From the sequence record OR699282.2: a stretch of DNA of 64,000 nucleotides; one strand, 5' to 3'. Under the pieces are notes generated by a model, which made no database searches, was not told the origin of the DNA, and was given only the letters and a program-made list of their open reading frames with translations. Every line of letters begins with the position of its first letter. The first letter of the stretch is position 1. Below, piece by piece: positions 11,288 through 47,019 of the stretch. The position numbers and the translations under genes are program-made.

Positions 11288-11500
11288 ATGGCTAATATCC
11301 GGTCGAAATTAAAAAATGCAAAACAAGTTTTATTTTCAGATCATGAATACTTTAATAAAGATATTACAGGAGTTACAAGTATCAAGGAAGTAAAAGAAAA
11401 AACCGGCGTTTTGTGTGATGTGCGATTAGTTGGAACATTTGGGAATAACGTGCTATATCGCTGCGGTGATTACAATTTTACACTGACTATCATTAACTAA
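11288..11500 (+). CDS. hypothetical early protein
   Basis: Promoter 11207. Confidence 0.75.
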   Translation: MANIRSKLKNAKQVLFSDHEYFNKDITGVTSIKEVKEKTGVLCDVRLVGTFGNNVLYRCGDYNFTLTIIN

Positions 11501-11582
11501 AAATATTATCACAGTACTATTGACATAGTTTGATAGTACTGACATAATAACTTTTATCAACTACACTACTAAGGAATTAAAA

Positions 11583-11762
11583 ATGGCTATCATCGCAAAA
11601 ACTGAAATCATCGGCCTGGATTCTATCATCATGACGTTTGAAGATCAAAAAGGTATGTATGTGGTTTCCTATGGTGATTATGTTCGGGAGTATGAAACGG
11701 TAGACGAAGCCTTTGAAAGTTACATTCGCCAGGTGAATAAAGCATACGACGACTACCGCTAA
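11583..11762 (+). CDS. hypothetical protein, 59 aa
   Basis: Promoter 11520, SD AAGGA. Confidence 0.75.
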   Translation: MAIIAKTEIIGLDSIIMTFEDQKGMYVVSYGDYVREYETVDEAFESYIRQVNKAYDDYR

Positions 11763-21255: not shown

Positions 21256-21505
21256 TGCGTAAAGGGATCTAGTACTGATTCAGAAAAAAGTCAAGGCGTT
21301 TTTTAAATTATGCGTTAAAAAAATGCATAGGTAATCCCTTGACTTTTTTGAAATAAAAGGGATTGGACTATGGCAAAATGCGTAGGGGGCTAAAGGGCGG
21401 GTAACCTTTAGCGACTTCGATAAAGGGGTATTACGAATAAAATGTTATTGATTTTTTATACGAATCGTATATTATAGGATTGATATTATTTTTAATGGAG
21501 TCCCT

Positions 21506-21703
21506 ATGCGTATTTTAACTAAAGAACAGCACCACGAAAGACTTATCAATAACATGGCTATGATAATGTATAAGTCCCATGACCGTGGTATTGCCTATAA
21601 GCGTGAATTAATTATGGCACTATTCATTGGAACTAACTTTCAGGAAAGGTATGTCAACGATTGGATTTGGTATTTAATTGAAGATATAACGAGTAAACTA
21701 TGA
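21506..21703 (+). CDS. family A (LGTxYQE) mini-protein
   Basis: FIGTNFQE. Confidence 0.8.
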   Translation: MRILTKEQHHERLINNMAMIMYKSHDRGIAYKRELIMALFIGTNFQERYVNDWIWYLIEDITSKL

Positions 21704-21900
21704 AAATGCGTATTTTAAATAAAGAAGAATATCAATCACTGTTACGTAAAAACTTCACAAAGATTTATAATACAGACACACACGTAGAACGAATGGAGTT
21801 ATACCTTTTGATTACTTTGGGAACTAACTATCAGGAAAGATGGGTGATTCAATATATGGATACATTGAAAAATAAAATATTGTCCACGAGGAAACAATGA
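21700..21900 (+). CDS. family A mini-protein
   Basis: TLGTNYQE. Confidence 0.8.
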   Translation: MKMRILNKEEYQSLLRKNFTKIYNTDTHVERMELYLLITLGTNYQERWVIQYMDTLKNKILSTRKQ

Positions 21901-22106
21901 AAACTATAACACGAACCCAATCATACGGTCTTATCTTGAAATACATGGACTTAATGGTGGATATCAGCAAAGACCTTCCTAAAACTGAAATTGAAGTTGC
22001 AAGAGCAGAGATCCGCATGTTGGCTGTACTGAACACAAACCATCAGGAAGATTATGTTGAAGAATGGATTCGATTTTTAATAGAAGATATTAAGAGTAAA
22101 CTATGA
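21897..22106 (+). CDS. family A mini-protein
   Basis: VLNTNHQE. Confidence 0.8.
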   Translation: MKTITRTQSYGLILKYMDLMVDISKDLPKTEIEVARAEIRMLAVLNTNHQEDYVEEWIRFLIEDIKSKL

Positions 22107-22318
22107 TTATTATAGAAAACTCATATCAATATACTGAACGCATCGCTGCCAGACAACTTGAAATCCTCATAATATACGAAGAGACTTCTGATTTAAACTT
22201 AGCCGAGGTATTGGAAAATGATATACTATTGGGTGCATTCTTAGGAACAGACTATCAGAAGTATTATGAGGAAAAGTATTTGTCATCTCTTGAGAAATAT
22301 ATCAGGAGCAAATTATGA
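22103..22318 (+). CDS. family A mini-protein
   Basis: FLGTDYQK. Confidence 0.8.
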   Translation: MIIIENSYQYTERIAARQLEILIIYEETSDLNLAEVLENDILLGAFLGTDYQKYYEEKYLSSLEKYIRSKL

Positions 22319-22527
22319 TTTTTTTAACACCAGAAGAATATAAGAAACGTTTCAATTCCGCACAGGGTGAAATCTTACTTATATACCTTTCAAATGCAGA
22401 CCTTAACTTATCAAGGGTATTAGAAAAAGATTTACTTATGGGTGCATTCCTTGATACAGACTTTCAGGTGTATTATGTAGGGGAATACTTAATTGCACTT
22501 CAGAATTATATCAGGAGTAAACTATGA
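22315..22527 (+). CDS. family A mini-protein
   Basis: FLDTDFQV. Confidence 0.8.
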   Translation: MIFLTPEEYKKRFNSAQGEILLIYLSNADLNLSRVLEKDLLMGAFLDTDFQVYYVGEYLIALQNYIRSKL

Positions 22528-22742
22528 AACATTTAAGTAACTCCGAGAAGAATAAAATTATCGTTGCTGCAATAAACAAATATTTTACACTTCCTCACAC
22601 AGAAGGTTTATGTGTAAGGGAACACAGGATAAACACCACCGATATACGCATGATGGCTGTACTGGGGACGAACTTTCAGGAAGAGTATGTTGTTGCACAC
22701 ATAGTTGCCCTCACTGATCTAATAAGGGACAAATGTAAATGA
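22524..22742 (+). CDS. family A mini-protein
   Basis: VLGTNFQE. Confidence 0.8.
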   Translation: MKHLSNSEKNKIIVAAINKYFTLPHTEGLCVREHRINTTDIRMMAVLGTNFQEEYVVAHIVALTDLIRDKCK

Positions 22743-22996
22743 AACACTTAACTGATGATGAATTTGAAACTATAATTCGTAAACTAACCCCCATCACAAG
22801 GATAGTCTACGGTGACCCCAGCCTTACATGGAACCAAATGCGAGCTAAAGTTAATGAGCTATGGTTGCTGTACTTTATGGGGACTCAATATCAAGATAAG
22901 TTTTGCACAGAATATATCGAACAATTAACGAATGTTATACAGGATAAACTAGATGATTATTTGCTCACAAAACATGAAGACTTTATCAGGAGTTGA
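22739..22996 (+). CDS. family A mini-protein
   Basis: FMGTQYQD. Confidence 0.8.
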   Translation: MKHLTDDEFETIIRKLTPITRIVYGDPSLTWNQMRAKVNELWLLYFMGTQYQDKFCTEYIEQLTNVIQDKLDDYLLTKHEDFIRS

Positions 22997-23225
22997 GTAT
23001 CAAACTGCCCTATTCTCTTTAATCCATGCCCTTAGAAAAAACAATGCCTTATATGGTGCACCTGAAGTGGATGTTATCAACGGTGAACTTTATCTTATGA
23101 AATTCATTGGAACAAACTATCAAGATCTGTTCATTCAACGATACTTATCAGCATTAAGAAACCAAATCCAATATAAAACCCAGAGAGCCAAAAAAGAATG
23201 GAATAAACAATGCGACACAGACTAA
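22974..23225 (+). CDS. family A mini-protein
   Basis: FIGTNYQD. Confidence 0.8.
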   Translation: MKTLSGVEYQTALFSLIHALRKNNALYGAPEVDVINGELYLMKFIGTNYQDLFIQRYLSALRNQIQYKTQRAKKEWNKQCDTD

Positions 23226-23458
23226 ATCACAAAATGTATTGTAAACTATTACAGACACTGGCACAGAAACACTATGACACGGTATCTGGAATATTACCCT
23301 ATGATATCATGCGTTTACTTCACTGTGAGGCCGAGATGCTTGTACTGATGACAGGCACTGATAAAAACGCAATTGCCAAATCAATAGATATGTTCATCGA
23401 AGCACACTGCCAACACATGAGAACCGAAATCTGGAGGAAAGAGAATGATAATCCTTAA
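23210..23458 (+). CDS. family A mini-protein, divergent
   Basis: MTGTDKNA. Confidence 0.65.
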   Translation: MRHRLNHKMYCKLLQTLAQKHYDTVSGILPYDIMRLLHCEAEMLVLMTGTDKNAIAKSIDMFIEAHCQHMRTEIWRKENDNP

Positions 23459-23660
23459 TGAGTATCAGTATCATTGGAGGTTACAAACTATCAAATCAAA
23501 AGTGTATAGTATTGTGTTAAACAAATCTATTGCACAAGAGGACAAATGTGTTATAATAGCTGAAATGAAGTTGGGTGCTTTCGTAGGGACAAACTATCAA
23601 AACATCTACACTGACGTATTGTTAAGTGCCTTACGTAACAAGGTGGTATCCAAAATATGA
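23445..23660 (+). CDS. family A mini-protein
   Basis: FVGTNYQN. Confidence 0.8.
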   Translation: MIILNEYQYHWRLQTIKSKVYSIVLNKSIAQEDKCVIIAEMKLGAFVGTNYQNIYTDVLLSALRNKVVSKI

Positions 23661-23875
23661 GAAATTTACAAGGCTTTGAATACATCAGACTCCTGAAAAC
23701 ATGTGGAAGCAGAAGGAGAATGATATCAAGCGATAAGAGCATCCAAGCTAACCTTAAGCACGCACTAGTAACTGAACTCTATGTAGGTGCACTCTTAGGC
23801 ACAAACTATCAACAAATGTATGTAGATCTATGGATTGACGCTCTACAGAAAGAGGTTAAAAGTAAATGCAAATGA
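23657..23875 (+). CDS. family A mini-protein
   Basis: LLGTNYQQ. Confidence 0.8.
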   Translation: MRNLQGFEYIRLLKTCGSRRRMISSDKSIQANLKHALVTELYVGALLGTNYQQMYVDLWIDALQKEVKSKCK

Positions 23876-24084
23876 TTAATTTAAGTAAAGACGAATTTTA
23901 TGTTATACTGGCGAAAACTTATCCAGCACGTAAGGCCGTTTATGATAGTCACATTATTGAACCCTCAAAGAAGTTGATTTTAGTAAATGAGATAAAGATG
24001 CTTTCAGTCTTAGGAACAAACTATCAAGAGAATGCTGTACTGATGTTAATTGATGCCCTCCAGAGAGAGGTTAAACGTAAATGA
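23866..24084 (+). CDS. family A mini-protein
   Basis: VLGTNYQE. Confidence 0.8.
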   Translation: MQMINLSKDEFYVILAKTYPARKAVYDSHIIEPSKKLILVNEIKMLSVLGTNYQENAVLMLIDALQREVKRK

Positions 24085-24311
24085 AAATGATTAATTTAAC
24101 TTACCATGAATATCAAAAACGTTTAAATGCATCCAGAGATATAAGGATTCAAATATTCAATAACAAAAAATTGAAACCTGATACCAGAAGAATCAAAATC
24201 ATAGAAGCCGTGTTGTGTAACTTCCTAGGGACTAACTATCAGGAAGGTAAGGTAGAAAACTATCTTATAGAACTCATGAATAGTATTGAAAATAAATGTA
24301 AGGGTAATTAA
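24081..24311 (+). CDS. family A mini-protein
   Basis: FLGTNYQE. Confidence 0.8.
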   Translation: MKMINLTYHEYQKRLNASRDIRIQIFNNKKLKPDTRRIKIIEAVLCNFLGTNYQEGKVENYLIELMNSIENKCKGN

Positions 24312-24312
24312 C

Positions 24313-24552
24313 ATGAAAATGATTAAATTATCTCAAGCAAAATATAAAGAACGCCTGGTGAAAATTGCACCTGGACTTAATGAAATCCATCACGGAGAAG
24401 TCATTAAACACGGAAATAAGATGATTATGAAACTTGAGTTAAAGGTGGGTGCATTCATAGGAACAAACTATCAGGAGTATTATGTAGATGAATACATAAT
24501 CGCACTTAAGAGATACATTGGAAGAAAACTATATATACAAACTAAAGAATAG
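24313..24552 (+). CDS. family A mini-protein
   Basis: FIGTNYQE; start moved to ATG. Confidence 0.8.
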   Translation: MKMIKLSQAKYKERLVKIAPGLNEIHHGEVIKHGNKMIMKLELKVGAFIGTNYQEYYVDEYIIALKRYIGRKLYIQTKE

Positions 24553-24581
24553 TATTGAAAATAAATGTAAGGGTATTTAAC

Positions 24582-24845
24582 ATGAAAATGATTAATTTAA
24601 GTAAAGATGAATATACCGAGCGTATGACAAAAATTACGCACAAACGTAATACAATCTATCACAACCCAGAAATTCAACACAGTAAGAAAATGATTATGAT
24701 GCGTGAGTTAAAGATGGGTGTATTCTTAGGAACAAACTATCAAGATACAGAAGTAAATCGCTTAATCGCGGAGTTACTACTGGAAATCAGAGGTAAGCTG
24801 TACTTTCATCAAATGACCCAACCACTGAGGTGTACTGATCGATGA
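24582..24845 (+). CDS. family A mini-protein
   Basis: FLGTNYQD; start moved to ATG. Confidence 0.8.
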   Translation: MKMINLSKDEYTERMTKITHKRNTIYHNPEIQHSKKMIMMRELKMGVFLGTNYQDTEVNRLIAELLLEIRGKLYFHQMTQPLRCTDR

Positions 24846-25093
24846 ATGCGATGAATATTGTGAATAACATCAGATTAGCAGAAAGATTTGATAGAATTGG
24901 GGAAGCACTGAGAAGATACGATAAAGAATATGGTCATTTGAGCTTTTCTATAGAAAAGAGATATGAACTTGAAGCAGAGTTTAAAATGCAGAGTCTCTTA
25001 GGCACACAGTATCAAAACCAATATATTCAAACTTGGATTGATTGTTTAATCCAGACAATTTACGTAAGAAACATTAAATGCAAAATGAAATGA
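24842..25093 (+). CDS. family A mini-protein
   Basis: LLGTQYQN. Confidence 0.8.
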   Translation: MNAMNIVNNIRLAERFDRIGEALRRYDKEYGHLSFSIEKRYELEAEFKMQSLLGTQYQNQYIQTWIDCLIQTIYVRNIKCKMK

Positions 25094-25332
25094 TATACTT
25101 AACACATGATGAGTTAACAGAAAGACTAGATAAATCCAAAAGACTTACAAATAAACTTCCTCACAACACAAATCAAACCCCAGCAGAAAGGAGTGCAGAA
25201 GTTTTATTCCAAAGATTACCATACCTTCTTGGAACTGATAGGCAAGAGTATCACATTGAACGTATAATTAAATATCTCAAAATTACTATTAAGGAAAAAG
25301 TAAATGCAAATGAAATACTTAACAGACGATGA
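25078..25332 (+). CDS. family A mini-protein
   Basis: LLGTDRQE; close paralog of the next gene. Confidence 0.8.
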   Translation: MQNEMIYLTHDELTERLDKSKRLTNKLPHNTNQTPAERSAEVLFQRLPYLLGTDRQEYHIERIIKYLKITIKEKVNANEILNRR

Positions 25333-25555
25333 GTTAAAAGAACGACTAATTAAATCCAGAAAACTTACAAATCAACTTCCAAACGACACAAACAAGTCAC
25401 ATGCCGAAAGGAGTGCAGAAGTTTTATACATTCAACTCATGTACTTTCTTGGCACTGACAGACAAGAGTATTACATTGAAAGTATGCTTCGATATCTTAA
25501 ATTCTCTATAAAGGAAAAGATACATGCTCAAGAATTTAAAAATCCTAACAGTTAA
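25304..25555 (+). CDS. family A mini-protein
   Basis: FLGTDRQE. Confidence 0.8.
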   Translation: MQMKYLTDDELKERLIKSRKLTNQLPNDTNKSHAERSAEVLYIQLMYFLGTDRQEYYIESMLRYLKFSIKEKIHAQEFKNPNS

Positions 25556-25766
25556 TGAATATCATACGATTGTAATGAAAACTAATAGTGCAATTTCTAA
25601 AAAATCAAACCCCAAGTACATACTGGAACACACATTTGAAGAACGTCAATTAGCTTTAGTTGAAGCAAAACTTCTTGCACTCCTAGGAACAAACTATCAA
25701 GAAGAATACATCAGAAAACTAATATACCTTTTAACTAAACATATAAGAAAAAGAAAAAATGCATGA
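25524..25766 (+). CDS. family A mini-protein
   Basis: LLGTNYQE. Confidence 0.8.
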   Translation: MLKNLKILTVNEYHTIVMKTNSAISKKSNPKYILEHTFEERQLALVEAKLLALLGTNYQEEYIRKLIYLLTKHIRKRKNA

Positions 25767-25993
25767 AACACTTGACAGATGATGAACATGGGCTTATAGT
25801 AATGGATGTAATCAACATCGAATACAAAAAGTTGATACGCTACCGTTGTTATGAAGATAAGCAACTCGTTCTAGCAGAACAGAAGTTGTTTCGACTCTTA
25901 AACACAAACTTCCAAGCACAATACGAAGAATCGTATATGTACCTTTTGGCGAGGAAAGCAAAAAGAGATTATGAAAATTTTAAGCAAAGGTGA
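25763..25993 (+). CDS. family A mini-protein
   Basis: LLNTNFQA. Confidence 0.8.
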   Translation: MKHLTDDEHGLIVMDVINIEYKKLIRYRCYEDKQLVLAEQKLFRLLNTNFQAQYEESYMYLLARKAKRDYENFKQR

Positions 25994-26186
25994 TTCAGTA
26001 ATATTACTTATAGAGAGTTCAAGTAAATTCTTAAACATAACACTGTCTGATATAGATGAAGATGACAAAGAAGTACTGAGAGCAGATTTAAGAGTACTGT
26101 TACATATCGGAACAAACCTACAAGAAGAATATGTAGAGTGCTACATCAATGAACTTAAAGAATTAGTACTGAGAACATGCAAATGA
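25971..26186 (+). CDS. family A mini-protein
   Basis: HIGTNLQE. Confidence 0.8.
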   Translation: MKILSKGDSVILLIESSSKFLNITLSDIDEDDKEVLRADLRVLLHIGTNLQEEYVECYINELKELVLRTCK

Positions 26187-26419
26187 AAATCCTTTCACCA
26201 AGTGAATACCACGAACTATTAAGTAGTTTAATTCTAAAATTGTATATAGCAAAGACCACAGATTTACCTGATGAAGAAAAAAATATTCTAATGAGTGAAA
26301 TCTATGTTAATTCTACCCTAGGGACTAACTATCAAGAATGTAATATTAATGATTACATCAAAGAACTAAAAAGGTTTATCCAATGCAAATGCGAATCATT
26401 ACCGAAACAGAATACCTAA
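26177..26419 (+). CDS. family A mini-protein
   Basis: TLGTNYQE. Confidence 0.8.
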   Translation: MQMKILSPSEYHELLSSLILKLYIAKTTDLPDEEKNILMSEIYVNSTLGTNYQECNINDYIKELKRFIQCKCESLPKQNT

Positions 26420-26625
26420 CAATCATAAATGGACTGTTTTTGAAGTTATTTGCCATTAACACATCAAAACTACCAGATACTGATAAAATTATTAAGTTAA
26501 ATGAAATCTATGTTCAAGCTACACTGGGAACTAACTATCAAGAAGCCAATGTGTATAATTACATTAATACACTCAAAAGGGTAATAAAATTAAAATGCAC
26601 AAACAGCCAATACACAAACCACTAG
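26383..26625 (+). CDS. family A mini-protein
   Basis: TLGTNYQE. Confidence 0.8.
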   Translation: MQMRIITETEYLTIINGLFLKLFAINTSKLPDTDKIIKLNEIYVQATLGTNYQEANVYNYINTLKRVIKLKCTNSQYTNH

Positions 26626-26825
26626 GAACAGCAGAATACATTGAACTCATGGCATTACACTTCTCATCCTTTCAGAAACTTAGGCGAGAATCAAAGAATG
26701 ATTTAGAATATACCATCAGAGGTTCCGATTTAAGAATGCTTCTCACCCTAGACACAGATTCCCAAGAGCGATTTGTCAATGAGCATATTAGAGCACTTTT
26801 AATGGAAATTCAAAGTAAACTATGA
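26595..26825 (+). CDS. family A mini-protein
   Basis: TLDTDSQE. Confidence 0.8.
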   Translation: MHKQPIHKPLGTAEYIELMALHFSSFQKLRRESKNDLEYTIRGSDLRMLLTLDTDSQERFVNEHIRALLMEIQSKL

Positions 26826-27037
26826 AGATAATATCAAACCAAGAGTACTTGGCACTATTCAGGAAGAATAATCACAAATATATGGCACTTGATTCAAGAA
26901 CTGATATAAGTGAACTTGAAAAAAATCTTTTGCGTTCAGATATGATAGTACTGACACTCTTAGGAACACAGCATCAAGAGAGAACTGTTAATTCACACAT
27001 AGGGATTCTTATGCAGATAGTACAGGAAAAGATATGA
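26822..27037 (+). CDS. family A mini-protein
   Basis: LLGTQHQE. Confidence 0.8.
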   Translation: MKIISNQEYLALFRKNNHKYMALDSRTDISELEKNLLRSDMIVLTLLGTQHQERTVNSHIGILMQIVQEKI

Positions 27038-27255
27038 GAATCATAACACAACAAGATATTCTTAAGTTCACAAGGGTTCATGCATCTGAATTTGATGCTA
27101 TATTATCAAAAAGTTACAACAACCCTTATACACAAGATGTACATTACAGTGAATTATGGATGTATATACTTTTAGGTACAAATAAGCAAGAGCAAGCCGT
27201 ACAGAAGTATTTGACAGCTTTACGTGATGCTACTGCTAATGGAGTACATGTTTAA
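27034..27255 (+). CDS. family A mini-protein
   Basis: LLGTNKQE. Confidence 0.8.
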   Translation: MRIITQQDILKFTRVHASEFDAILSKSYNNPYTQDVHYSELWMYILLGTNKQEQAVQKYLTALRDATANGVHV

Positions 27256-27256
27256 T

Positions 27257-27499
27257 ATGAAAGTACTGACAGAACTAGAAATGTATCATAGATTTAATAA
27301 GTACTATCATTTACTTAAGCCTATACAGAGGATTAAATGTCCATTTGAAGAGAAACAGGTTTTAATCTATGAGCACAAGTTCTTTGTATCATTAGGTACA
27401 GATCAACAAGAGTACTATTTGACGTTGTACTTGATTACATTAATAGATTTAATTCACTATAAAACCAAACAAGCTAATAAAGAGAAATATGAAAACTAA
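27257..27499 (+). CDS. family A mini-protein
   Basis: SLGTDQQE; start uncertain (27248 or 27257). Confidence 0.75.
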   Translation: MKVLTELEMYHRFNKYYHLLKPIQRIKCPFEEKQVLIYEHKFFVSLGTDQQEYYLTLYLITLIDLIHYKTKQANKEKYEN

Positions 27500-27833
27500 T
27501 ATACAACTCAAGGTATATAAATCATTTGAACATACATATATCAAAAGTAGTCTATGTAGAGATGTAATGGATTACAAGGGTAAGCCATTCACAATTACCT
27601 ATGATTCTTATGTTAGTGATTTATATATATCATTTGTTAATTACGAAAATAAAATATACAAGCACGTTGATATTAAAGATTTAAGTACTTTATCACCAGA
27701 GGAATACTTTCAGGAATCATTAGTATGGGATTTAGAGTTTCCTATGCCATTAGTACATAAGATGATAGTACTAATGAAAGAATCTAAACAGGAGCCTAAT
27801 GGTGATTATGAAGAACACACAGTTGAGTATTAA
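27489..27833 (+). CDS. family B (EExFQxS) protein
   Basis: DLSTLSPEEYFQESLVWD. Confidence 0.8.
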   Translation: MKTNIQLKVYKSFEHTYIKSSLCRDVMDYKGKPFTITYDSYVSDLYISFVNYENKIYKHVDIKDLSTLSPEEYFQESLVWDLEFPMPLVHKMIVLMKESKQEPNGDYEEHTVEY

Positions 27834-28203
27834 AAGTACTGATAATATTAAGAGTTATACAAGCTCAAGTACTGTGACAATCGAAGTGAATTCTCTTAAT
27901 GCTGGTAATACAGTAGATAAGTTCTTTATTGCTCAAGGGTACAGGAAAGATATTCATCAATATTGTTCAGTATATGGGGAGTACAATAGTACTGAAGATA
28001 TAATTTATTGGTCAACACATCAAGATTATATAACTAAAATTGGCGTTCCAGATGTTAGTACTTTATCTGAAGAAGAATACTTTCAGTACAGCTTAATATG
28101 TGATGTACCTATACCTTTAGGGTTAATCAAGGGTATACAGGAAGAGGTTCATAAGCTTAAATCCATGAGTAAAGGTACTTTCATTAGAACAGTGCAATAC
28201 TAG
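27799..28203 (+). CDS. family B protein
   Basis: DVSTLSEEEYFQYSLICD. Confidence 0.8.
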   Translation: MVIMKNTQLSIKSTDNIKSYTSSSTVTIEVNSLNAGNTVDKFFIAQGYRKDIHQYCSVYGEYNSTEDIIYWSTHQDYITKIGVPDVSTLSEEEYFQYSLICDVPIPLGLIKGIQEEVHKLKSMSKGTFIRTVQY

Positions 28204-28204
28204 C

Positions 28205-28233
28205 TTGACAGTACTTTTCATTACTGATATAGT
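28205..28233 (+). promoter_or_regulatory. sigma70 promoter, extended -10
   Basis: TTGACA-17-TATAGT with TG. Confidence 0.7.
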
Positions 28234-28262
28234 ACACTAACGTTAATCATAGGGTAAAAATT

Positions 28263-28508
28263 ATGTTAAATTTTTTAAATTTTCTTATCGTCTTGTGTAT
28301 TGTTCTTGGGATTGCACCATTTGTATTGTATTTCATGGATTCAGATGAAATGCAAAAGATGAATTGCACAAGGACAGGACAGAGTAGAGTAGAGACGATT
28401 CTTATGCCTGTTACGGTTATTGTTAATAATATGCCCATTACCAACATGGTCCCTACCCTAACGACAACGTACCAGTACTCTTGTGCTGACGGAGAGAGGT
28501 GGAGATGA
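28263..28508 (+). CDS. membrane-anchored protein
   Basis: N-terminal hydrophobic helix; C-x-RTG..YSCxDG. Confidence 0.75.
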   Translation: MLNFLNFLIVLCIVLGIAPFVLYFMDSDEMQKMNCTRTGQSRVETILMPVTVIVNNMPITNMVPTLTTTYQYSCADGERWR

Positions 28509-28816
28509 AATTTAATATAGCAAAAACATCGAGTATATGTATTTTTGGTTATGCAGAAGAGTTAGGTGATATTGACATTCTTTTGTACAAAAAGGATGGT
28601 GTTATGCATTTCAAGTACCAGGATGAAGAGGCAGACAATTATCTTTTACCTAATTTAGTACAAATGCAGGAAGAGGAATTATTCCAGTACAGCTTAGTAT
28701 ACGACATTGATATTTGCACGATGCCAGTACTAATTAGTATTCAAAAAGTGATGCTCGATATGTATGATAAGCTAATACAAGGTATGTCAGGGAGGATCAT
28801 TGAAATTGACATATAA
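28499..28816 (+). CDS. family B protein
   Basis: MQEEELFQYSLVYD. Confidence 0.8.
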   Translation: MEMKFNIAKTSSICIFGYAEELGDIDILLYKKDGVMHFKYQDEEADNYLLPNLVQMQEEELFQYSLVYDIDICTMPVLISIQKVMLDMYDKLIQGMSGRIIEIDI

Positions 28817-29012
28817 GAATATACCTAATGCATATGAAATGAAGTACAGGGAGTTTATTAAAAATGTACACACCGATCCTTTTAATATCAAAATATCAGA
28901 GTTTGATGTATTATTTTATCTAGGGTCAATAGCACAGGATCAATGCGTTGATAAGCTCATATGGTCCTTGAAAATGGAGATACAATGCAGACCCAAATAT
29001 ATAAAAAGGTAG
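28800..29012 (+). CDS. family A mini-protein
   Basis: FYLGSIAQD. Confidence 0.7.
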   Translation: MKLTYKNIPNAYEMKYREFIKNVHTDPFNIKISEFDVLFYLGSIAQDQCVDKLIWSLKMEIQCRPKYIKR

Positions 29013-29248
29013 ATTCTTTATTGTACGCTTCAAAGTACAGGGATTTTTGTTTACGAGGGGGAGAGGAAGATTTCTCTCTGAGATTATCTGAATTTAATAT
29101 GTTATTTTATCTTGGTACAAAAGATCAAGAAGATACAGTACAGAAATTTATCAAGCACCTTGAACAAAAAATTAATATGCAAATTTTGATGCTTAAGTTA
29201 CAGAATGAGATAAATGAATATGAATCCAGAAATAGTTCAGGATCTTAA
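28985..29248 (+). CDS. family A mini-protein
   Basis: FYLGTKDQE. Confidence 0.75.
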   Translation: MQTQIYKKVDSLLYASKYRDFCLRGGEEDFSLRLSEFNMLFYLGTKDQEDTVQKFIKHLEQKINMQILMLKLQNEINEYESRNSSGS

Positions 29249-36688: not shown

Positions 36689-36884
36689 AGACGTTTCATT
36701 TTTACAGGCCGCAGGGGGTCAAAAAAATTTCCGCTGAAAAACATGCTAAGGTATATGTTTAATATAAAGTTTTATATTGTGTTTTTCAGAGTACAGTCCA
36801 TGTTTCCTGAAACAAAAAATACCCCGCCCCCGCAACGTGCTCCTTATATTGGAGTTTACCTTATTAATTATAGTAGAGATTAAG

Positions 36885-37262
36885 ATGGAAATAAAATATA
36901 ATGAATTTTGTGCAAGGACATGGATGTACACTGGTGAGTTAGTTACGCACTCTAACTTATACAAGGGTGATTTAAACTACGCTAGGGACAAGATTTTAAA
37001 GTACTGGAATGCTGACTTTTATTTGATGGATTTTAGTACTGGGTTTCATGGGATATCTATCGAGATGCCGGACTATACAGTACTTGATGATGCTGCACTG
37101 TTCCAGGAGGCATTAGTATTTGATAAGAAGTACATCTGTACATTAGAAGAGATGATTGAATTACAGCGTAGAATTAAATGTATTCACAGGGAATGTATAG
37201 ATATCTGGTGCAGTACTGGTGAGGCCGATTTCTGGAAATTTTTTAATCTAGGAGAAGAGTGA
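36885..37262 (+). CDS. family B protein (DYTxLD subfamily)
   Basis: DYTVLDDAALFQEALVFD; start moved. Confidence 0.8.
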   Translation: MEIKYNEFCARTWMYTGELVTHSNLYKGDLNYARDKILKYWNADFYLMDFSTGFHGISIEMPDYTVLDDAALFQEALVFDKKYICTLEEMIELQRRIKCIHRECIDIWCSTGEADFWKFFNLGEE

Positions 37263-37618
37263 TGGAATTTGATTTTTTAATATCAGTACATACTTTCAAG
37301 CACAGTTATCAGTACTTTTGTAATTTAAACAAAGGTGATTTAATGCACAGTGCGAATGAGTATGTTCATTACACTCAGGGTAAATTTACATTCATTGATT
37401 ACAGTTCATTACAGTATCCACACCAAGATATGCCGGACTATACATTAATGGATACCGCAGAACTATTCCAAGAATCATTAGTATTTGATAAGAAGTACTT
37501 GTGTACATTTGAAGAAGTTATTGCAATACAAAATGAAATGAAAGAGTATGCTGCTTTGCATAAACCCAATGCAAGTATTAATCAAGAATACAAATTCAAT
37601 TTAGGAATTCAAGAATGA
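37259..37618 (+). CDS. family B protein (DYTxLD subfamily)
   Basis: DYTLMDTAELFQESLVFD. Confidence 0.8.
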   Translation: MMEFDFLISVHTFKHSYQYFCNLNKGDLMHSANEYVHYTQGKFTFIDYSSLQYPHQDMPDYTLMDTAELFQESLVFDKKYLCTFEEVIAIQNEMKEYAALHKPNASINQEYKFNLGIQE

Positions 37619-37974
37619 CATATGATTATTCTATGTACTATTATAAGTTACCTAAAGGATGGGACTTGTGCTGTAATCTTATTAAGGGCGACTCGGAACA
37701 TGAGTTGAGTTTATATATGCATTACAAAGATTCTTGTTTTAAATTTATTCATGTATCACATGACGACTATGACTATGAATCTGAGAGTCTTATAGATTAT
37801 ACAGTACTGGACGATGGCGAACTATTTCAGGCTGCATTAGTGTTTGATAAGAATAAGTACTCCTGTACATTTGAAGAAATGGTTTCTTTGCAAAATGAAA
37901 TGAAGAGATTTGAAAAAGAAAACGTATTTAATCCATCCCCATCAAGAACGAATAATTATTATTTCAATATATGA
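37615..37974 (+). CDS. family B protein (DYTxLD subfamily)
   Basis: DYTVLDDGELFQAALVFD. Confidence 0.8.
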   Translation: MTYDYSMYYYKLPKGWDLCCNLIKGDSEHELSLYMHYKDSCFKFIHVSHDDYDYESESLIDYTVLDDGELFQAALVFDKNKYSCTFEEMVSLQNEMKRFEKENVFNPSPSRTNNYYFNI

Positions 37975-41492: not shown

Positions 41493-42025
41493 GAAAAATT
41501 AACATTAATGATTATGATGCATTACAAGATTTATCAAAAAAGATTCGCACTATCGTACCAGTACTGAAGAAATGCAGTACTGGTTTAATCGATCCTAGTA
41601 CTGTTGTTAATGAGAAGTACAATTTTCATTATGTATTACAGGGTACTGGGGCATTCCAGAAGTGTGAGGTGCGTGAGACACACGTAATTGATACATCATT
41701 GTTTTCTATTGGTGCACCTGTGTCGAATAATACTATTTTCCTAGACAACGCTGGAAATATTCAACAATTAACATTTAAGAAAAGGAAAAAGAACAATAAC
41801 ATTGGTGTGTATGCGATGAAGTGGGGTCAACCTGATTTGAAGCGTGAAATTCACATCCCTAAGTACAATTACAATGCATTTGACGAACAGTGTTTTCAAC
41901 TATCGTGTACTGACCCTGACTATGCTATTATTCAGTTCTATATGGAATTGCAGATAGCATTTAACAGTAATTTGTATATTAACTTATTGGCGATGAACAT
42001 CGATGAAGTATTCAAAAACATTTAA
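41489..42025 (+). CDS. family B protein
   Basis: FDEQCFQLSC. Confidence 0.75.
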   Translation: MRKININDYDALQDLSKKIRTIVPVLKKCSTGLIDPSTVVNEKYNFHYVLQGTGAFQKCEVRETHVIDTSLFSIGAPVSNNTIFLDNAGNIQQLTFKKRKKNNNIGVYAMKWGQPDLKREIHIPKYNYNAFDEQCFQLSCTDPDYAIIQFYMELQIAFNSNLYINLLAMNIDEVFKNI

Positions 42026-42221
42026 TCGAATTGAATACATGAGAACTGTGAGTGCAGTGTGGGACATATGGTTCACTACTAAACCAAAAATGGATTACCA
42101 TGACTTTAAGCTCTTGTTCTTCGTTGGCTCTAACAAACAGGATGTTGCAATGAAGGGTTATATTCAGCACTTACAGGAACTAATCCAGAAGAGAATATAT
42201 GAAAATAATAGACCAAAATGA
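42003..42221 (+). CDS. family A mini-protein
   Basis: FFVGSNKQD. Confidence 0.7.
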   Translation: MKYSKTFNRIEYMRTVSAVWDIWFTTKPKMDYHDFKLLFFVGSNKQDVAMKGYIQHLQELIQKRIYENNRPK

Positions 42222-42390
42222 CATTGCTAAACTATTCAATATATATTCTACTAGAATGATGCAAACAGACTCATATAGTACTGAATTCAAAGAGTTGAAA
42301 GTCCTGATGTACTTGGGAACCCAATATCAGGAACAAGTTATTTTGGAATATATTAATTCGCTGAAGAAGGATATCCGTTATGTACGATGA
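42199..42390 (+). CDS. family A mini-protein
   Basis: YLGTQYQE. Confidence 0.8.
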   Translation: MKIIDQNDIAKLFNIYSTRMMQTDSYSTEFKELKVLMYLGTQYQEQVILEYINSLKKDIRYVR

Positions 42391-43538: not shown

Positions 43539-43901
43539 ATGAACACATTAAGTATTACATACTATACAACTAAAAAATTAGTTACTTGTTTAATATCATT
43601 GAAGACAAATCATGATGATATGTTTGATATGGCGGCATATGAATTAGAATTATCAGAAGATGGCTTCAAGAGCTATGAAGTATATAGCTATGTTCGTGAA
43701 GATGTAATTGACACTACACTAATGCAAGAGGATGAGTTATTCCAAGAAAGTTTAGTATGGGATAATAAGTACGATTGTAACTTTGATTTCTTATGTTTAA
43801 TCCAGAAAGAAATGAAAAGAATCTTTGATAATTATCCAGTGAAGAGATTGAGTACTGGACCGGAGCAGTACAGGAGAATTTTATTCCGTTATGAAGACTG
43901 A
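43539..43901 (+). CDS. family B protein
   Basis: MQEDELFQESLVWD. Confidence 0.8.
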   Translation: MNTLSITYYTTKKLVTCLISLKTNHDDMFDMAAYELELSEDGFKSYEVYSYVREDVIDTTLMQEDELFQESLVWDNKYDCNFDFLCLIQKEMKRIFDNYPVKRLSTGPEQYRRILFRYED

Positions 43902-44226
43902 ATTAGTGAAAGTAATGTACGCTACTCATATTAAACTACTACTTGTGAAATTTGATTATAATAAAAAACATAATGATTTCTATACTTTAATTCGTGATGA
44001 AAATACATTCTCCTTGCGATGCAACAATATACCGTTGAAGATAAATGATTTTACTTCACTTGACGAGGGTGAATTATTTCAAGAATCATTAGTTTTTAAT
44101 AGTAATATAAAAATTGATATAGAAGTTATTAAAAAATACCAGATTTTATTGAACAAAATTATGAATTGTTATCCATGTGAAATAGGTGGTCATATGCAGT
44201 TCAAATCAAAAATGTATGAATTATGA
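43891..44226 (+). CDS. family B protein
   Basis: LDEGELFQESLVFN. Confidence 0.8.
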   Translation: MKTELVKVMYATHIKLLLVKFDYNKKHNDFYTLIRDENTFSLRCNNIPLKINDFTSLDEGELFQESLVFNSNIKIDIEVIKKYQILLNKIMNCYPCEIGGHMQFKSKMYEL

Positions 44227-44233
44227 GGTTTAT

Positions 44234-44770
44234 ATGTTAGATGAAAAAATGAACAATGGAACACAATATAATCATCTTAAGTTAGATACATTCGAATCAG
44301 CTATCAGTACTGCACAAGATATAATTGATATTATCAAGTTCATTAAAGAAAATAAGTTCAAATGTTTGAAAATACTAAATCGTTCAATGTACCGTGATAA
44401 CAATATTCATGTATCAGTACGTAGACCGAAAGATAAAGAAAGTGGGAGAGATTTCTATAACAACAGTGAGCAGTTCGAATGTGAATATGATCCAGAATTC
44501 AGAGGCGGTTTCATGTGTTACAGTATAAAGGATACCTCACACATTGAGATACGTTCATCGAAAGGTGGCATACGTACATTAGAGTTCATTGATATAGTTT
44601 TAAATCAGGAATACTACTTTCAACTATCATTATTGTTTCCTGCATACGATTTAGGAGTTCTATTCATGTATAAGTACTTTTATGAGCACTGGAATGAAGA
44701 CTTCTATCTGGACTTAGAAGATTACCAATTAGTTTGGAAAGAAATGGTAGAACTTCGCAATCCCTCTTGA
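44234..44770 (+). CDS. family B protein
   Basis: NQEYYFQLSLLFP; start uncertain. Confidence 0.75.
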   Translation: MLDEKMNNGTQYNHLKLDTFESAISTAQDIIDIIKFIKENKFKCLKILNRSMYRDNNIHVSVRRPKDKESGRDFYNNSEQFECEYDPEFRGGFMCYSIKDTSHIEIRSSKGGIRTLEFIDIVLNQEYYFQLSLLFPAYDLGVLFMYKYFYEHWNEDFYLDLEDYQLVWKEMVELRNPS

Positions 44771-45788: not shown

Positions 45789-46140
45789 GAAAACAATTCA
45801 GTACATGACGGATGGCAATGAATGCTTTGCTTCAAGATATGAATTCAACAAGAACCATTTCGTAACCTATATCCCTGAATATAATCAGTTTTATCTACAG
45901 ATTTACCAAAATGATTCATATATGAATGAGATATATTCTGAAATAAAAATCCTGGATTATAGTACTTTATCAGAAGAGGAATTGTTTCAGCAGAGCACTA
46001 TCAGTACTGAAGATGTGTATGAAATAATGGAATACCAGAAGGTACTTAAATATTTCCATGAAGTTCAGGATATACAAATGGATAGTGTTAAAGCGTGGAA
46101 TTATAACACATACGAGGTAAATTATGTTCGAAATGATTAA
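45778..46140 (+). CDS. family B protein
   Basis: DYSTLSEEELFQQSTI. Confidence 0.8.
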   Translation: MQNKKTIQYMTDGNECFASRYEFNKNHFVTYIPEYNQFYLQIYQNDSYMNEIYSEIKILDYSTLSEEELFQQSTISTEDVYEIMEYQKVLKYFHEVQDIQMDSVKAWNYNTYEVNYVRND

Positions 46141-46537
46141 AATTATGCAACGATGTATTGTAGACCAACACGGGATATATGGATATAGTTTAAGTGCTCC
46201 TATTGACAAAAATAAAACAACCTATGTAAGCTATAATGCTGTACAAGGATTTGATATATTCATTGATGCCAACAATAAAATCAAACAAGCTAAGGATGTG
46301 TCTATAATGACCCCTGACGAGCTATTTCAGTACAGCTTAGTTCTGCCTACCTGTATTGATTTACAACGTCTAGGAGCTATACAGAAGGTTTTACGCGAAC
46401 ATAAAGTACAACCCAATAAAGTCACACACATTCCAGAAACAATCTTCAAAACCATAGAAGTAGAAACTCCTGATTATATGTTAAGTGATGATGAGTACTA
46501 CGAGAAACACTTCCCTGGTAAAGTTTGGAGAGACTAA
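46124..46537 (+). CDS. family B protein
   Basis: MTPDELFQYSLVLP. Confidence 0.8.
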   Translation: MFEMIKIMQRCIVDQHGIYGYSLSAPIDKNKTTYVSYNAVQGFDIFIDANNKIKQAKDVSIMTPDELFQYSLVLPTCIDLQRLGAIQKVLREHKVQPNKVTHIPETIFKTIEVETPDYMLSDDEYYEKHFPGKVWRD

Positions 46538-47019
46538 TGAACCGAAAGTACAGAGAAACTATGAAGTTCGCTAAGGAGTGTTTAGAGACAGTTGATTTCA
46601 TTTTCGATAACAAAGACTCACTGGGTCATCACTTCGTAATTACAAAGAAAGAAGATAAGAGATACAAGTGTGAAAGATTAGGATACAGTATTGAGTTCTC
46701 CTTAATGATTGATGGAATGATAAACTCCTTATATGAATGTGGTAAGACTGATTACCTTTCATTTAGATCATGGAGTGAAGGTATCATGTTCTTGAGAACA
46801 AATGGAGTTTTATATCCGTTTCTTGATGATTTATCAGAAGAAAGTTACTTTCAAAATAGTTTAATTTACACAGAAAAAGAACTCAAGATGCTATTCATTA
46901 TGTCGTACTTTAAAAAGTACTGCAATTTTAAATCATTATCTTTTGAGATCTCTGCAATGAAAGTATTCATTAAAAATGTAAAAGAATTAAAGAGGATTTA
47001 CGATGTACATAGAAAATGA
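46525..47019 (+). CDS. family B protein
   Basis: LSEESYFQNSLIY. Confidence 0.8.
   Translation: MERLMNRKYRETMKFAKECLETVDFIFDNKDSLGHHFVITKKEDKRYKCERLGYSIEFSLMIDGMINSLYECGKTDYLSFRSWSEGIMFLRTNGVLYPFLDDLSEESYFQNSLIYTEKELKMLFIMSYFKKYCNFKSLSFEISAMKVFIKNVKELKRIYDVHRK

Follow-up and report, generated by a model that had tools for sequence, protein, structure and literature searches.

The 64-kb window analysed here comprises the first 64 kb of record OR699282.2, the left end of the genome of the jumbo phage Escherichia phage BAU.Micro_ELP-22 (373,488 bp, genus Asteriusvirus; hereafter ELP-22), and contains at 21506-27499 a tandem array of 27 + strand genes for paralogous small proteins, referred to here as the LGT family. 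The anatomy of the array supports the view that it is a non-structural accessory module, probably expressed early, with members that act individually. What the members do can be stated more tentatively: with somewhat less than an even chance, the array may encode a panel of small binders, each of them specialised and all expressed together early on, that serve in host takeover or counter-defence. We arrived at this reading because the exposed surface of the protein differs between the copies yet is conserved among the orthologs of each copy; the early timing, an action by binding and the nature of the targets are the parts that we infer. The array region matches ELP-22 at 100% identity. Of the 36 related records listed, which come from jumbo phages infecting E. 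coli and Salmonella (PBECO4, 121Q and phAPEC6, for example), most show 84-96% identity to it. All genes in and around the array are annotated as 'hypothetical protein' in the GenBank entry of OR699282.2.

The gene array, its predicted protein fold and its probable operon

The listing of open reading frames (ORFs) contains 27 consecutive + strand ORFs of 65-96 amino acids (aa) spanning 21506-27499, which correspond to proteins of 65-87 aa when the annotated starts are used. A family hidden Markov model (HMM) was built from these ORFs and run on all ORFs of the window. The 27 array ORFs scored E-values of 1.7e-27 to 7.3e-18 and exactly four further ORFs were retrieved, the next best ORF being at E 0.45. 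The original prediction had named 27 tandem paralogs and outliers at 28800, 28985, 42003 and 42199, and precisely these 31 genes were recovered. The first nine array genes are located at 21506-21703, 21700-21900, 21897-22106, 22103-22318, 22315-22527, 22524-22742, 22739-22996, 22974-23225 and 23210-23458, genes 10 to 18 at 23445-23660, 23657-23875, 23866-24084, 24081-24311, 24313-24552, 24582-24845, 24842-25093, 25078-25332 and 25304-25555, and genes 19 to 27 at 25524-25766, 25763-25993, 25971-26186, 26183-26419, 26389-26625, 26595-26825, 26822-27037, 27034-27255 and 27248-27499, all on the + strand. The outlier genes, also on the + strand, are found at 28839-29012 (57 aa from the annotated start in an ORF that opens at 28800; E 1e-5, with an LGS..Q motif in the family alignment), 28985-29248 (87 aa, ORF opening at 28961; E 1.3e-8, likewise in the family alignment), 42003-42221 (72 aa, among genes of 150-200 aa; E 8.4e-7) and 42199-42390 (63 aa, overlapping a neighbouring gene; E 7.3e-12).

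Overlaps were present at 24 of the 26 internal junctions, namely 13 ATGA overlaps and 11 overlaps of 8-32 nt, while the remaining two were gaps of 1 and 29 nt; about 74% of 348 junctions in 13 genomes overlap. The description of the genes as overlapping by ATGA thus applies to 13 of the 26 junctions and not to the longer overlaps and the gaps, and the suggestion that an SKL ending encodes the next Shine-Dalgarno sequence held in five members and not in the rest. Most other junctions have a purine-rich element 6-13 nt upstream of the ATG. Promoter- and terminator-like sites inside the array are no commoner than in shuffled sequence, and the 13 genomes have kept the reading frames, the overlaps and the Shine-Dalgarno-like elements intact. 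Overlapping or abutting stop and start codons without intergenic regulatory signals, as in a translationally coupled polycistron, are thus present, and the tight packing noted earlier is consistent with coupled translation.

The two non-overlapping junctions, the only ones in the array, lie upstream of 24313-24552 and 24582-24845. These genes have near-identical leaders of about 25 nt (GAAAATAAATGTAAGGGTA(A/T)TTAAC, at 24286-24314 and 24555-24583), which mark a single, comparatively late event in which a gene was duplicated along with the junction before it.

The 31 proteins were aligned with a mean column identity of 26%. The conservation pattern was determined from 166 diverse members and includes, in the N-terminal part, M1, K2 (67%), L/I4 (90%), T/S5 (74%), E8 (73%) and Y9 (50%), as well as I23. 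The C-terminal half is characterised by E/D40 (95%), L47 (74%), G48 (93%), T49 (90%; T/S49 98%), Q52 (97%) and E/D53 (67%), and further conserved positions are L43, V56, Y59, I60, L63 (87%), I67 (76%) and K/R70 (78%). Both motifs described in the original prediction, the N-terminal one and the LGT motif, hold across this broader set. An AlphaFold2 model based on the 31-sequence alignment, with a predicted local distance difference test score (pLDDT) of 97.6 and a predicted template modelling score (pTM) of 0.83, is a four-helix domain with helices at residues 6-15, 17-25, 31-45 and 52-71 and a beta-bridge from residue 2 to T49. Independent models in BFVD of relatives from phages 121Q, UB, slurp01 and PBECO4 superpose at template modelling (TM) scores of 0.57-0.93, and we conclude from this that the family has one common fold. 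With a confident model in which the conserved positions are mostly hydrophobic core, the fixed scaffold that had been postulated is supported. The exposed surfaces, on the other hand, differ strongly between paralogs.

The periodicity of the helix 4 profile places Q52 and K70 in phase with a hydrophobic stripe at positions 56, 59, 63 and 67, and T/S5-x-x-E8 resembles an N-capping box. Hence the invariant polar residues presumably serve mainly to hold the fold together, with variable residues covering most of the surface. The predicted charge is mixed, with 20 of the 31 members basic (isoelectric point, pI, above 8), seven acidic and four near-neutral.

Homology searches connected the array to a single previously catalogued family. 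The profile phrog_4148 was matched by 30 of the 31 members over the full length (best E 1.3e-26), with residues 1-72 of the member at 23657-23872 aligning to positions 1-72 of 74, and phrog_28039 was matched by 13 members; neither PHROG has an assigned function. No Pfam family was matched by more than one of the 31 members (best E 0.0046, none above the gathering threshold), a profile search of the PDB gave no related sequence, and Foldseek against the PDB gave no convincing fold match (best E 2.3). Against the AFDB clusters, Foldseek retrieved at a probability of 1.00 only two unnamed proteins of 71 and 76 aa, apparently members of the family, and the confident matches in BFVD were uncharacterised proteins of Asteriusvirus phages. 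Neither the ESM Atlas, searched by shape and by features, nor VIA-align yielded a convincing relative outside the family, and TetR-family rows in the Atlas and AFDB lists were at chance level only (TM 0.55 and 0.31). We found no helix-turn-helix, ribbon-helix-helix or zinc motif, and neither a DNA-binding domain match nor an enzyme signature was obtained from Pfam, the PDB, Foldseek, VIA-align or the ESM Atlas. The PADLOC defence models gave scattered single-member matches only (E >= 0.0014). A colicin/pyocin immunity protein was considered and rejected, there being no Colicin_Pyocin match in Pfam even at E <= 1 and none among the Foldseek and VIA-align matches. The profile searches of Pfam, the PDB and the PHROGs thus matched no characterised family, and the earlier statement that no function has been described agrees with these results and with a literature that amounts to one sentence. 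The text of the phAPEC6 virion-proteome paper mentions none of the phAPEC6 array genes gp467c-gp489c.

Upstream, the array borders on the direct terminal repeat (DTR) of the genome. We identified window positions 1-21279 as the DTR because they recur, at 100% identity over 21,279 bp, at the right end of the record (352210-373488). The same repeat is annotated at 1-21525 in the record of vB_Ec-M-J. This left DTR copy (1-21279, + strand) consists of small + strand genes, most of which have their own near-consensus sigma-70 promoter. We counted 19 promoter sites with at least 11 of the 12 consensus bases in the DTR, about one per small gene and with a spacer motif common to most (TTGACA-N9-11-GTACTG-TATAAT), versus 12 in the remaining 42.7 kb of the window. 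All DTR promoters face inward from the left end, an arrangement like that of the strong early promoters of T7 or T5. The DTR encodes a DksA/TraR zinc-finger protein and a GNAT acetyltransferase, each above the Pfam threshold and of a kind typical of host takeover. In the phage fEgEco12 a DTR of 20,993 bp has been confirmed by PhageTerm and restriction digests (PMC13070987), and RNA sequencing of the related jumbo phage PA5oct identified the DTR genes as highly transcribed early genes that are read on one strand from promoters of the TTGAC/TATAAT type (PMC7318152).

The array starts 227 bp past the inner DTR edge, and this gap contains a hairpin, a bipartite motif and a promoter. The promoter scan placed a sigma-70-like sequence, TTGATT-N16-TATTAT (TTGACT in most relatives), at 21448-21475 on the + strand. 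This head promoter (TTGATT/TTGACT-N16-TAxxAT) is located 58 nt before the first ATG in 12 of the 13 genomes, including the divergent Turkey5; the exception is phage A4, where an endonuclease gene has been inserted and is followed by a different promoter, with TTGACA. A conserved sigma-70-type promoter directly upstream, as in an early operon of the host RNA polymerase, is thereby in place, and by analogy with PA5oct the array may be expected to be expressed early. At the other end, the gap-free block is closed by two overlapping + strand paralogs with an EEYFQxSL motif (27489-27833 and 27799-28203, matching phrog_13866), the first of which overlaps the last LGT gene by 11 nt. A homologous gene of 113-114 aa follows the array in six related genomes checked via their annotation tables. 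The first intergenic gap after the array contains the next strong promoter-like site (TTGACA-N17-TATAGT preceded by TG, 28205-28233, +, 11 of 12 consensus bases), probably the start of the operon that comes next. On the simplest reading, the array and the two EEYFQ genes would form one operon of 29 genes read by the host RNA polymerase.

In the mechanism that we propose, the sigma-70 RNA polymerase of the host would read the array as a single gap-free early operon from the promoter just inside the unique DNA, and the overlapping stop and start codons would couple the translation of the 27 genes. Each gene would give a small soluble non-virion protein of about 70 aa built on one compact four-helix scaffold, in which an N-terminal strand may clasp the G-T-x-x-Q turn that leads into the last helix, and the hydrophobic stripe of helix 4 may be buried.

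Age, turnover and selection of the array genes

The paralogs within ELP-22 are dissimilar, with a median identity of 33% and a maximum of 63%. The loci of the 13 genomes contain 21-31 members each (25 were counted in 121Q), which were sorted into 57 types at 60% identity. Gene order is conserved among these genomes, and cassettes have been inserted, lost or replaced. The 12 close genomes carry 23-31 copies each; 14 types occur in all of them (universal) and the other 24 vary, so that 24 of 38 are dispensable.

A family tree was inferred for 97 members from five lineages, using only 83 columns, and most of its deep forks are weakly supported. Copies from different genomes intermix in the tree, with 50 label changes as compared to a minimum of 4 and a mean of 56.2 for shuffled labels, and the well-supported ortholog pairs are colinear (M15 versus M18, and ELP-22 W03, W07, W10, W17, W24 and W25 versus Turkey5). 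The intermixed tree and the colinear ortholog pairs therefore indicate that the duplications are old and that the order has been kept. Recent tandem duplication within the lineages was rejected, since the copies do not cluster by genome and the paralogs are no more than 63% identical. The outlier at 42003-42221 clusters with a pair from Turkey5 and the metagenomic contig L018 at a support of 86 in the Shimodaira-Hasegawa-like approximate likelihood ratio test (SH-aLRT), the pair itself being supported at 95.

The turnover of cassettes bears on the suggestion, also made in the original prediction, that the proteins are interchangeable subunits of one complex, for example an intracellular scaffold whose heteromeric subunits would be produced in near-equal amounts by coupled translation. 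The tight gene overlap without internal promoters or terminators, the common scaffold with its long and amphipathic helix 4 and the colinear core of 14 universal types would suit such an assembly. The suggestion fits poorly with the presence and absence of cassettes, as more than half of the types are dispensable among close relatives, and with copy numbers that range from 21 to 31 in Asteriusvirus and fall to about 13 in RaK2, where the members are dispersed in groups of two to three. Moreover, the proteins are absent from the text of the phAPEC6 virion study, their surfaces diverge freely between paralogs and no conserved exposed patch was inferred, and we consider a single assembly very unlikely.

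To quantify selection on the family, we calculated the ratio of nonsynonymous to synonymous substitutions (dN/dS), which for orthologs from close genomes was 0.32-0.38, with about 0.35 for the family as a whole, as compared to 0.20-0.27 for the flanking small genes on the DTR side and 0.26-0.45 for those downstream. The corresponding ratio of changes within types (pN/pS), counted along minimum-spanning trees, was 0.38 overall. It was 0.42 in the N-terminal segment (columns 1-16; p 1e-23 versus neutrality), 0.48 in the middle segment (columns 17-39; p 2e-28) and 0.31 in the C-terminal segment (columns 40-72; p 1e-94). Positive selection was sought column by column within ortholog groups and none was found, no column having a pN/pS value above 0.70. 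The by-site test proposed in the original prediction thus points to purifying selection on each copy. Its hypervariable segment stands insofar as the surfaces differ strongly between paralogs, but the segment is not diversifying within orthologs (0.48 in the middle segment, columns at 0.70 or below). Since the variable surface is specific to each paralog and conserved within it, the pattern is one of specialisation rather than continuing hypervariation.

These results also bear on the published view of such arrays. Hua et al. (2017; PMC5646251) devoted one sentence to tandem arrays in 121Q and phage G, in which the genes were not specified but were called very similar and treated as recent filler; for 121Q the remark may well refer to the LGT array. 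According to this idea, which was repeated in the phAPEC6 paper, tandem duplicates with little individual function filled an enlarged capsid as a by-product of genome expansion. We regard this as highly improbable for the LGT family. The copies are dissimilar, the duplications are older than lineages that now lack DNA similarity, every segment is under purifying selection, and the frames, overlaps and Shine-Dalgarno-like elements have been preserved in 13 genomes. The age of the copies and the selection on them largely refute the filler explanation and correct the published picture of recent tandem duplication.

A comparison of ELP-22 with Turkey5 revealed a sharp change in identity, from 89-97% for proteins on the DTR side to 28-71% for array proteins across the boundary, which fits an exchange of the whole module between diverged lineages.

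Distribution and candidate functions

We searched 1.84 billion cluster representatives with the family profile and obtained 104 proteins at E <= 0.001, nearly all of them 52-96 aa. In GenBank the family was found in 36 Asteriusvirus records and nine records of Klebsiella RaK2-like phages (Alcyoneusvirus). Three metagenomic contigs carry 15, 12 and 18 tandem members followed by arrays of genes of 150-200 aa, as in the window, and have no DNA similarity to the window except for a motif at the DTR junction. A scan of 185,579 bacterial and archaeal genomes with back-translated LGTNYQE gave 55 matches, all due to chance (about 100 were expected, and the HMM rejected them), and the one true match of the pattern in viral contigs was RaK2. 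The family is confined to RaK2/121Q-like jumbo phages, including their uncultured relatives.

A few members are fused to other domains. Two RaK2 members (L077:7714-8100 and 11379-11726; protein P0096) combine the LGT domain with a shared C-terminal domain of about 55 aa that has the motif ...YxKFxF/V...CE(T/S)xExA...NNY. This domain had no sequence match in Pfam or the PDB and only near-identical homologs; a resemblance to HicB/UPF0150-like antitoxins, which we had considered, gained no support from sequence. A 269-aa protein, P0081, joins an LGT domain (phrog_4148, 1.2e-10) to an orphan domain of 200 aa, for which neither a relative in the window nor any homologs were found. The gene is located close to where the array ends downstream, with two outlier members after it, in phages represented by 347-358 kb Asteriusvirus-like contigs inside four E. 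coli assemblies at NCBI (L002-L005: GCA_036253055.1, GCA_036253035.1, GCA_036254115.1 and GCA_036252695.1). One protein from these contigs is named 'hypothetical protein [Escherichia coli]', and the contigs could reflect either carriage by the isolate or co-sequencing.

The C-terminal domain of P0081 was examined for likeness to T5orf172/GIY-YIG, which was rejected as an identification because the TM score was below 0.4 on a poor model (pTM 0.29). As a faint lead it touches on the possibility that the proteins bind DNA or RNA, either as gene-specific modulators of transcription or translation in the phage's own programme or as DNA-coating proteins, since proteins of this kind in the matching rows carry N-terminal domains such as KilA-N and Bro-N, which are DNA-binding. 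Such roles would agree with the 20 basic members and with the 14 types universal among close genomes, and have been proposed for the analogous expansion in phage G (Iyer et al. 2021; PMC7824862). Yet the lead falls below any meaningful threshold and comes from a domain without homologs, the family itself has neither a nucleic-acid-binding motif nor a fold match to a nucleic-acid binder, seven members are clearly acidic, and the presence and absence of cassettes among close relatives would be unusual for core regulators. A regulatory role is in our judgement unlikely.

The family is restricted to a single clade of jumbo phages with the same Enterobacteriaceae as hosts, and several E. coli assemblies include contigs of about 350 kb from phages of this type, so that some hosts may already harbour one. 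These observations would be compatible with an action between phages. Here the panel would bind polymorphic proteins of related co-infecting or resident phages or of mobile elements, for superinfection exclusion or for protection from it. The signals for early expression, the diversity of the copies and the exchange of cassettes suit this explanation as they do the targeting of the host, and sequence alone does not separate the two. No known exclusion protein is similar, and we rate inter-phage weapons or shields as distinctly unlikely.

Returning to the panel of specialised binders, we propose that about 30 proteins would be made together at the start of infection, each directed at a different host component or at a variant of one. 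The targets may be components involved in host takeover or polymorphic defence or toxin effectors, with competing phages as a possible alternative, and the panel would evolve by slow divergence together with the swap, gain and loss of whole cassettes rather than by rapid point mutation. The 'library of binders or decoys against host defence' of the original prediction is plausible to this extent, as both the setting in a probable early region and the turnover of cassettes would fit it. Defence and anti-defence genes are enriched in the highly variable regions of other large phages (PMC12028318). A more specific version, which we hold to be rather doubtful, is that of a hard-wired phage repertoire in which about 30 co-expressed variants of one miniature scaffold not seen before would act in advance, each neutralising its own allele or family of immunity or toxin effectors of the host, or of proteins of rival phages, so that the cassette content would help to set which strains can be infected.

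Several observations weigh against the panel of binders. The classic signature of an arms race is absent, and dN/dS for the family is no higher than for the neighbouring small genes. The 14 types that are universal among close relatives could point to a core phage function. In the model, the invariant polar residues could be structural, as suggested above, or could form a shared binding site, and the mixed predicted charge leaves room for nucleic-acid binding by many of the members. General searches of Pfam, the PDB and the PHROGs, which did not include a dedicated search with anti-defence profiles, gave no homologue involved in anti-defence or host takeover.

Among phages, sets of early genes transcribed by the host RNA polymerase include the class I genes of T7, the pre-early genes in the terminal repeat of T5 and the immediate-early genes of T4. 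The LGT array resembles these and the PA5oct set in its location at or near the terminal repeat, in strong sigma-70-type promoters and in many small non-structural proteins encoded in one direction. It differs from them in that their proteins are unrelated and usually have their own promoters, whereas about 30 paralogs of one fold are here packed into one spacer-free operon. In terms of design, a similar principle is seen in the immunity proteins Im2, Im7, Im8 and Im9 against colicin DNases, which are small four-helix inhibitors with conserved and variable helices that act by 'dual recognition'. Both are helical proteins of about 70-85 aa built around a conserved core motif, and in the LGT family, too, specificity would reside in helices that vary between paralogs; the analogy concerns only how the family might work. 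Multigene families also occur in large eukaryotic viruses, such as the MGF genes of African swine fever virus (ASFV) and the host-range families of poxviruses. Like anti-defence islands, anti-CRISPR loci and the ASFV MGF genes, the LGT array is a cluster of small accessory genes in a hypervariable region, with cassette gain and loss and early-expression signals. In contrast to the fast turnover typical of such loci, its paralogs evolve slowly and are kept as orthologs. No Aca-type regulator is present, and the general searches gave no match to a known anti-defence protein.

Further parallels are the arrays of 121Q and phage G, which like the LGT array are large expansions of small-protein paralogs within one jumbo phage lineage. 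The expansion in phage G consists of about 35 zinc-ribbon copies (PMC7824862), whereas the LGT family is all-helical and has no metal-binding motif; its copies are old, divergent and individually constrained, unlike the recent filler pictured in PMC5646251. The PHROG entry phrog_4148 represents the same family as the array but without function, structure or context. To it can now be added the array organisation, the position at the DTR boundary, a fold model, and data on age and selection. In the literature, no account was found of the fold, the DTR-boundary position, the promoter, the wider clade or the selection pattern, nor did a transcriptome of an Asteriusvirus come to light.

Most jumbo-phage genes lack a known function, and phages of this group have been proposed for therapy against E. 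coli, Salmonella and Klebsiella. The array is a bounded and experimentally tractable block of about 6 kb, with one promoter, 27 genes and a small fold that is confidently modelled but unmatched. If the members do bind factors of the host or of rival phages, they would constitute a natural library on a single scaffold, which would help to discover new targets in defence or takeover and would serve as a compact framework for binders.

The repeat junction and neighbouring paralog families

Between the DTR and the array, a long hairpin at 21286-21352 begins 7 nt past the DTR edge, with 13-bp arms (AAAAAAGTCAAGG / CCTTGACTTTTTT) and an inner hairpin. It gave an Rfam match to bglG-cis-reg at 32.9 bits, below the threshold of 80, and it may be a terminator between DTR transcription and the array. 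The invariant bipartite non-coding motif GGATTGGACTATG ... GCGGGTAA..TTAGCGA follows at 21360-21414 (no strand assigned), where the DTR gives way to unique DNA. A single copy per genome is present at this position in 12 loci of Asteriusvirus, and another copy is recorded at L011:8637-8681. The divergent metagenomic contig L018 has one as well (L018:673-716), and this is its sole stretch with DNA similarity to the window. The motif has no Rfam match above threshold and no RNA covariation, for which latter reason it is probably a protein-binding DNA site, perhaps for packaging, for processing of the DTR junction or for a regulator. A scan of the window for tRNAs and Rfam families detected neither. 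The insertion in A4 (L013:3979-4797), between the DTR junction and the array head, encodes a 272-aa endonuclease (phrog_681, E 3e-10) and looks like a homing-endonuclease insertion; as a hint to the function of the array it was rejected, the endonuclease being unrelated to the family.

Other paralog families are found around the repeat. A second tandem array, outside the window at 346732-351935 of OR699282.2 (L006:13244-18447), contains at least 23 paralogs of about 60 aa with the motif MNxxKEYY...LxLI (phrog_11711). It is located just before the right DTR copy, and in a concatemer two different small-gene arrays would flank the DTR. A relationship of this array to the LGT family was rejected at an hhalign probability of 2%, and all hhalign comparisons of the LGT family with the second array, the families of 150-200 aa and the EEYFQ family were below 4%.

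Within the window, at least 29 ORFs of 130-230 aa at 29955-55977 form one further superfamily, as determined by iterative HMM searches; the six members checked all match only PHROGs of unassigned function and no Pfam family. Both RaK2 and the metagenomic contigs have the same layout, in which a small-gene array precedes one of 150-200-aa genes. The EEYFQxSL family has nine members of 105-161 aa, at 27489-28816, 36777-37974, 43539-44250 and 46124-46540, of which the three checked match phrog_13866. Two of its members close the LGT operon, and hhalign gave a 64% probability of a link to the 150-200-aa family. If the LGT array is indeed the hard-wired repertoire considered above, then, together with the other paralog families flanking the DTR, paralog panels would be a general strategy of RaK2-like jumbo phages.

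The base composition changes along the array. In the segment 20001-28000 of the window, the G+C content declines steadily through the array, being 0.39 where the array starts and 0.31 where it ends, with values of about 0.31 thereafter, and the excess of A over T is maximal inside the array, with a skew of 0.24 at 24-26 kb.

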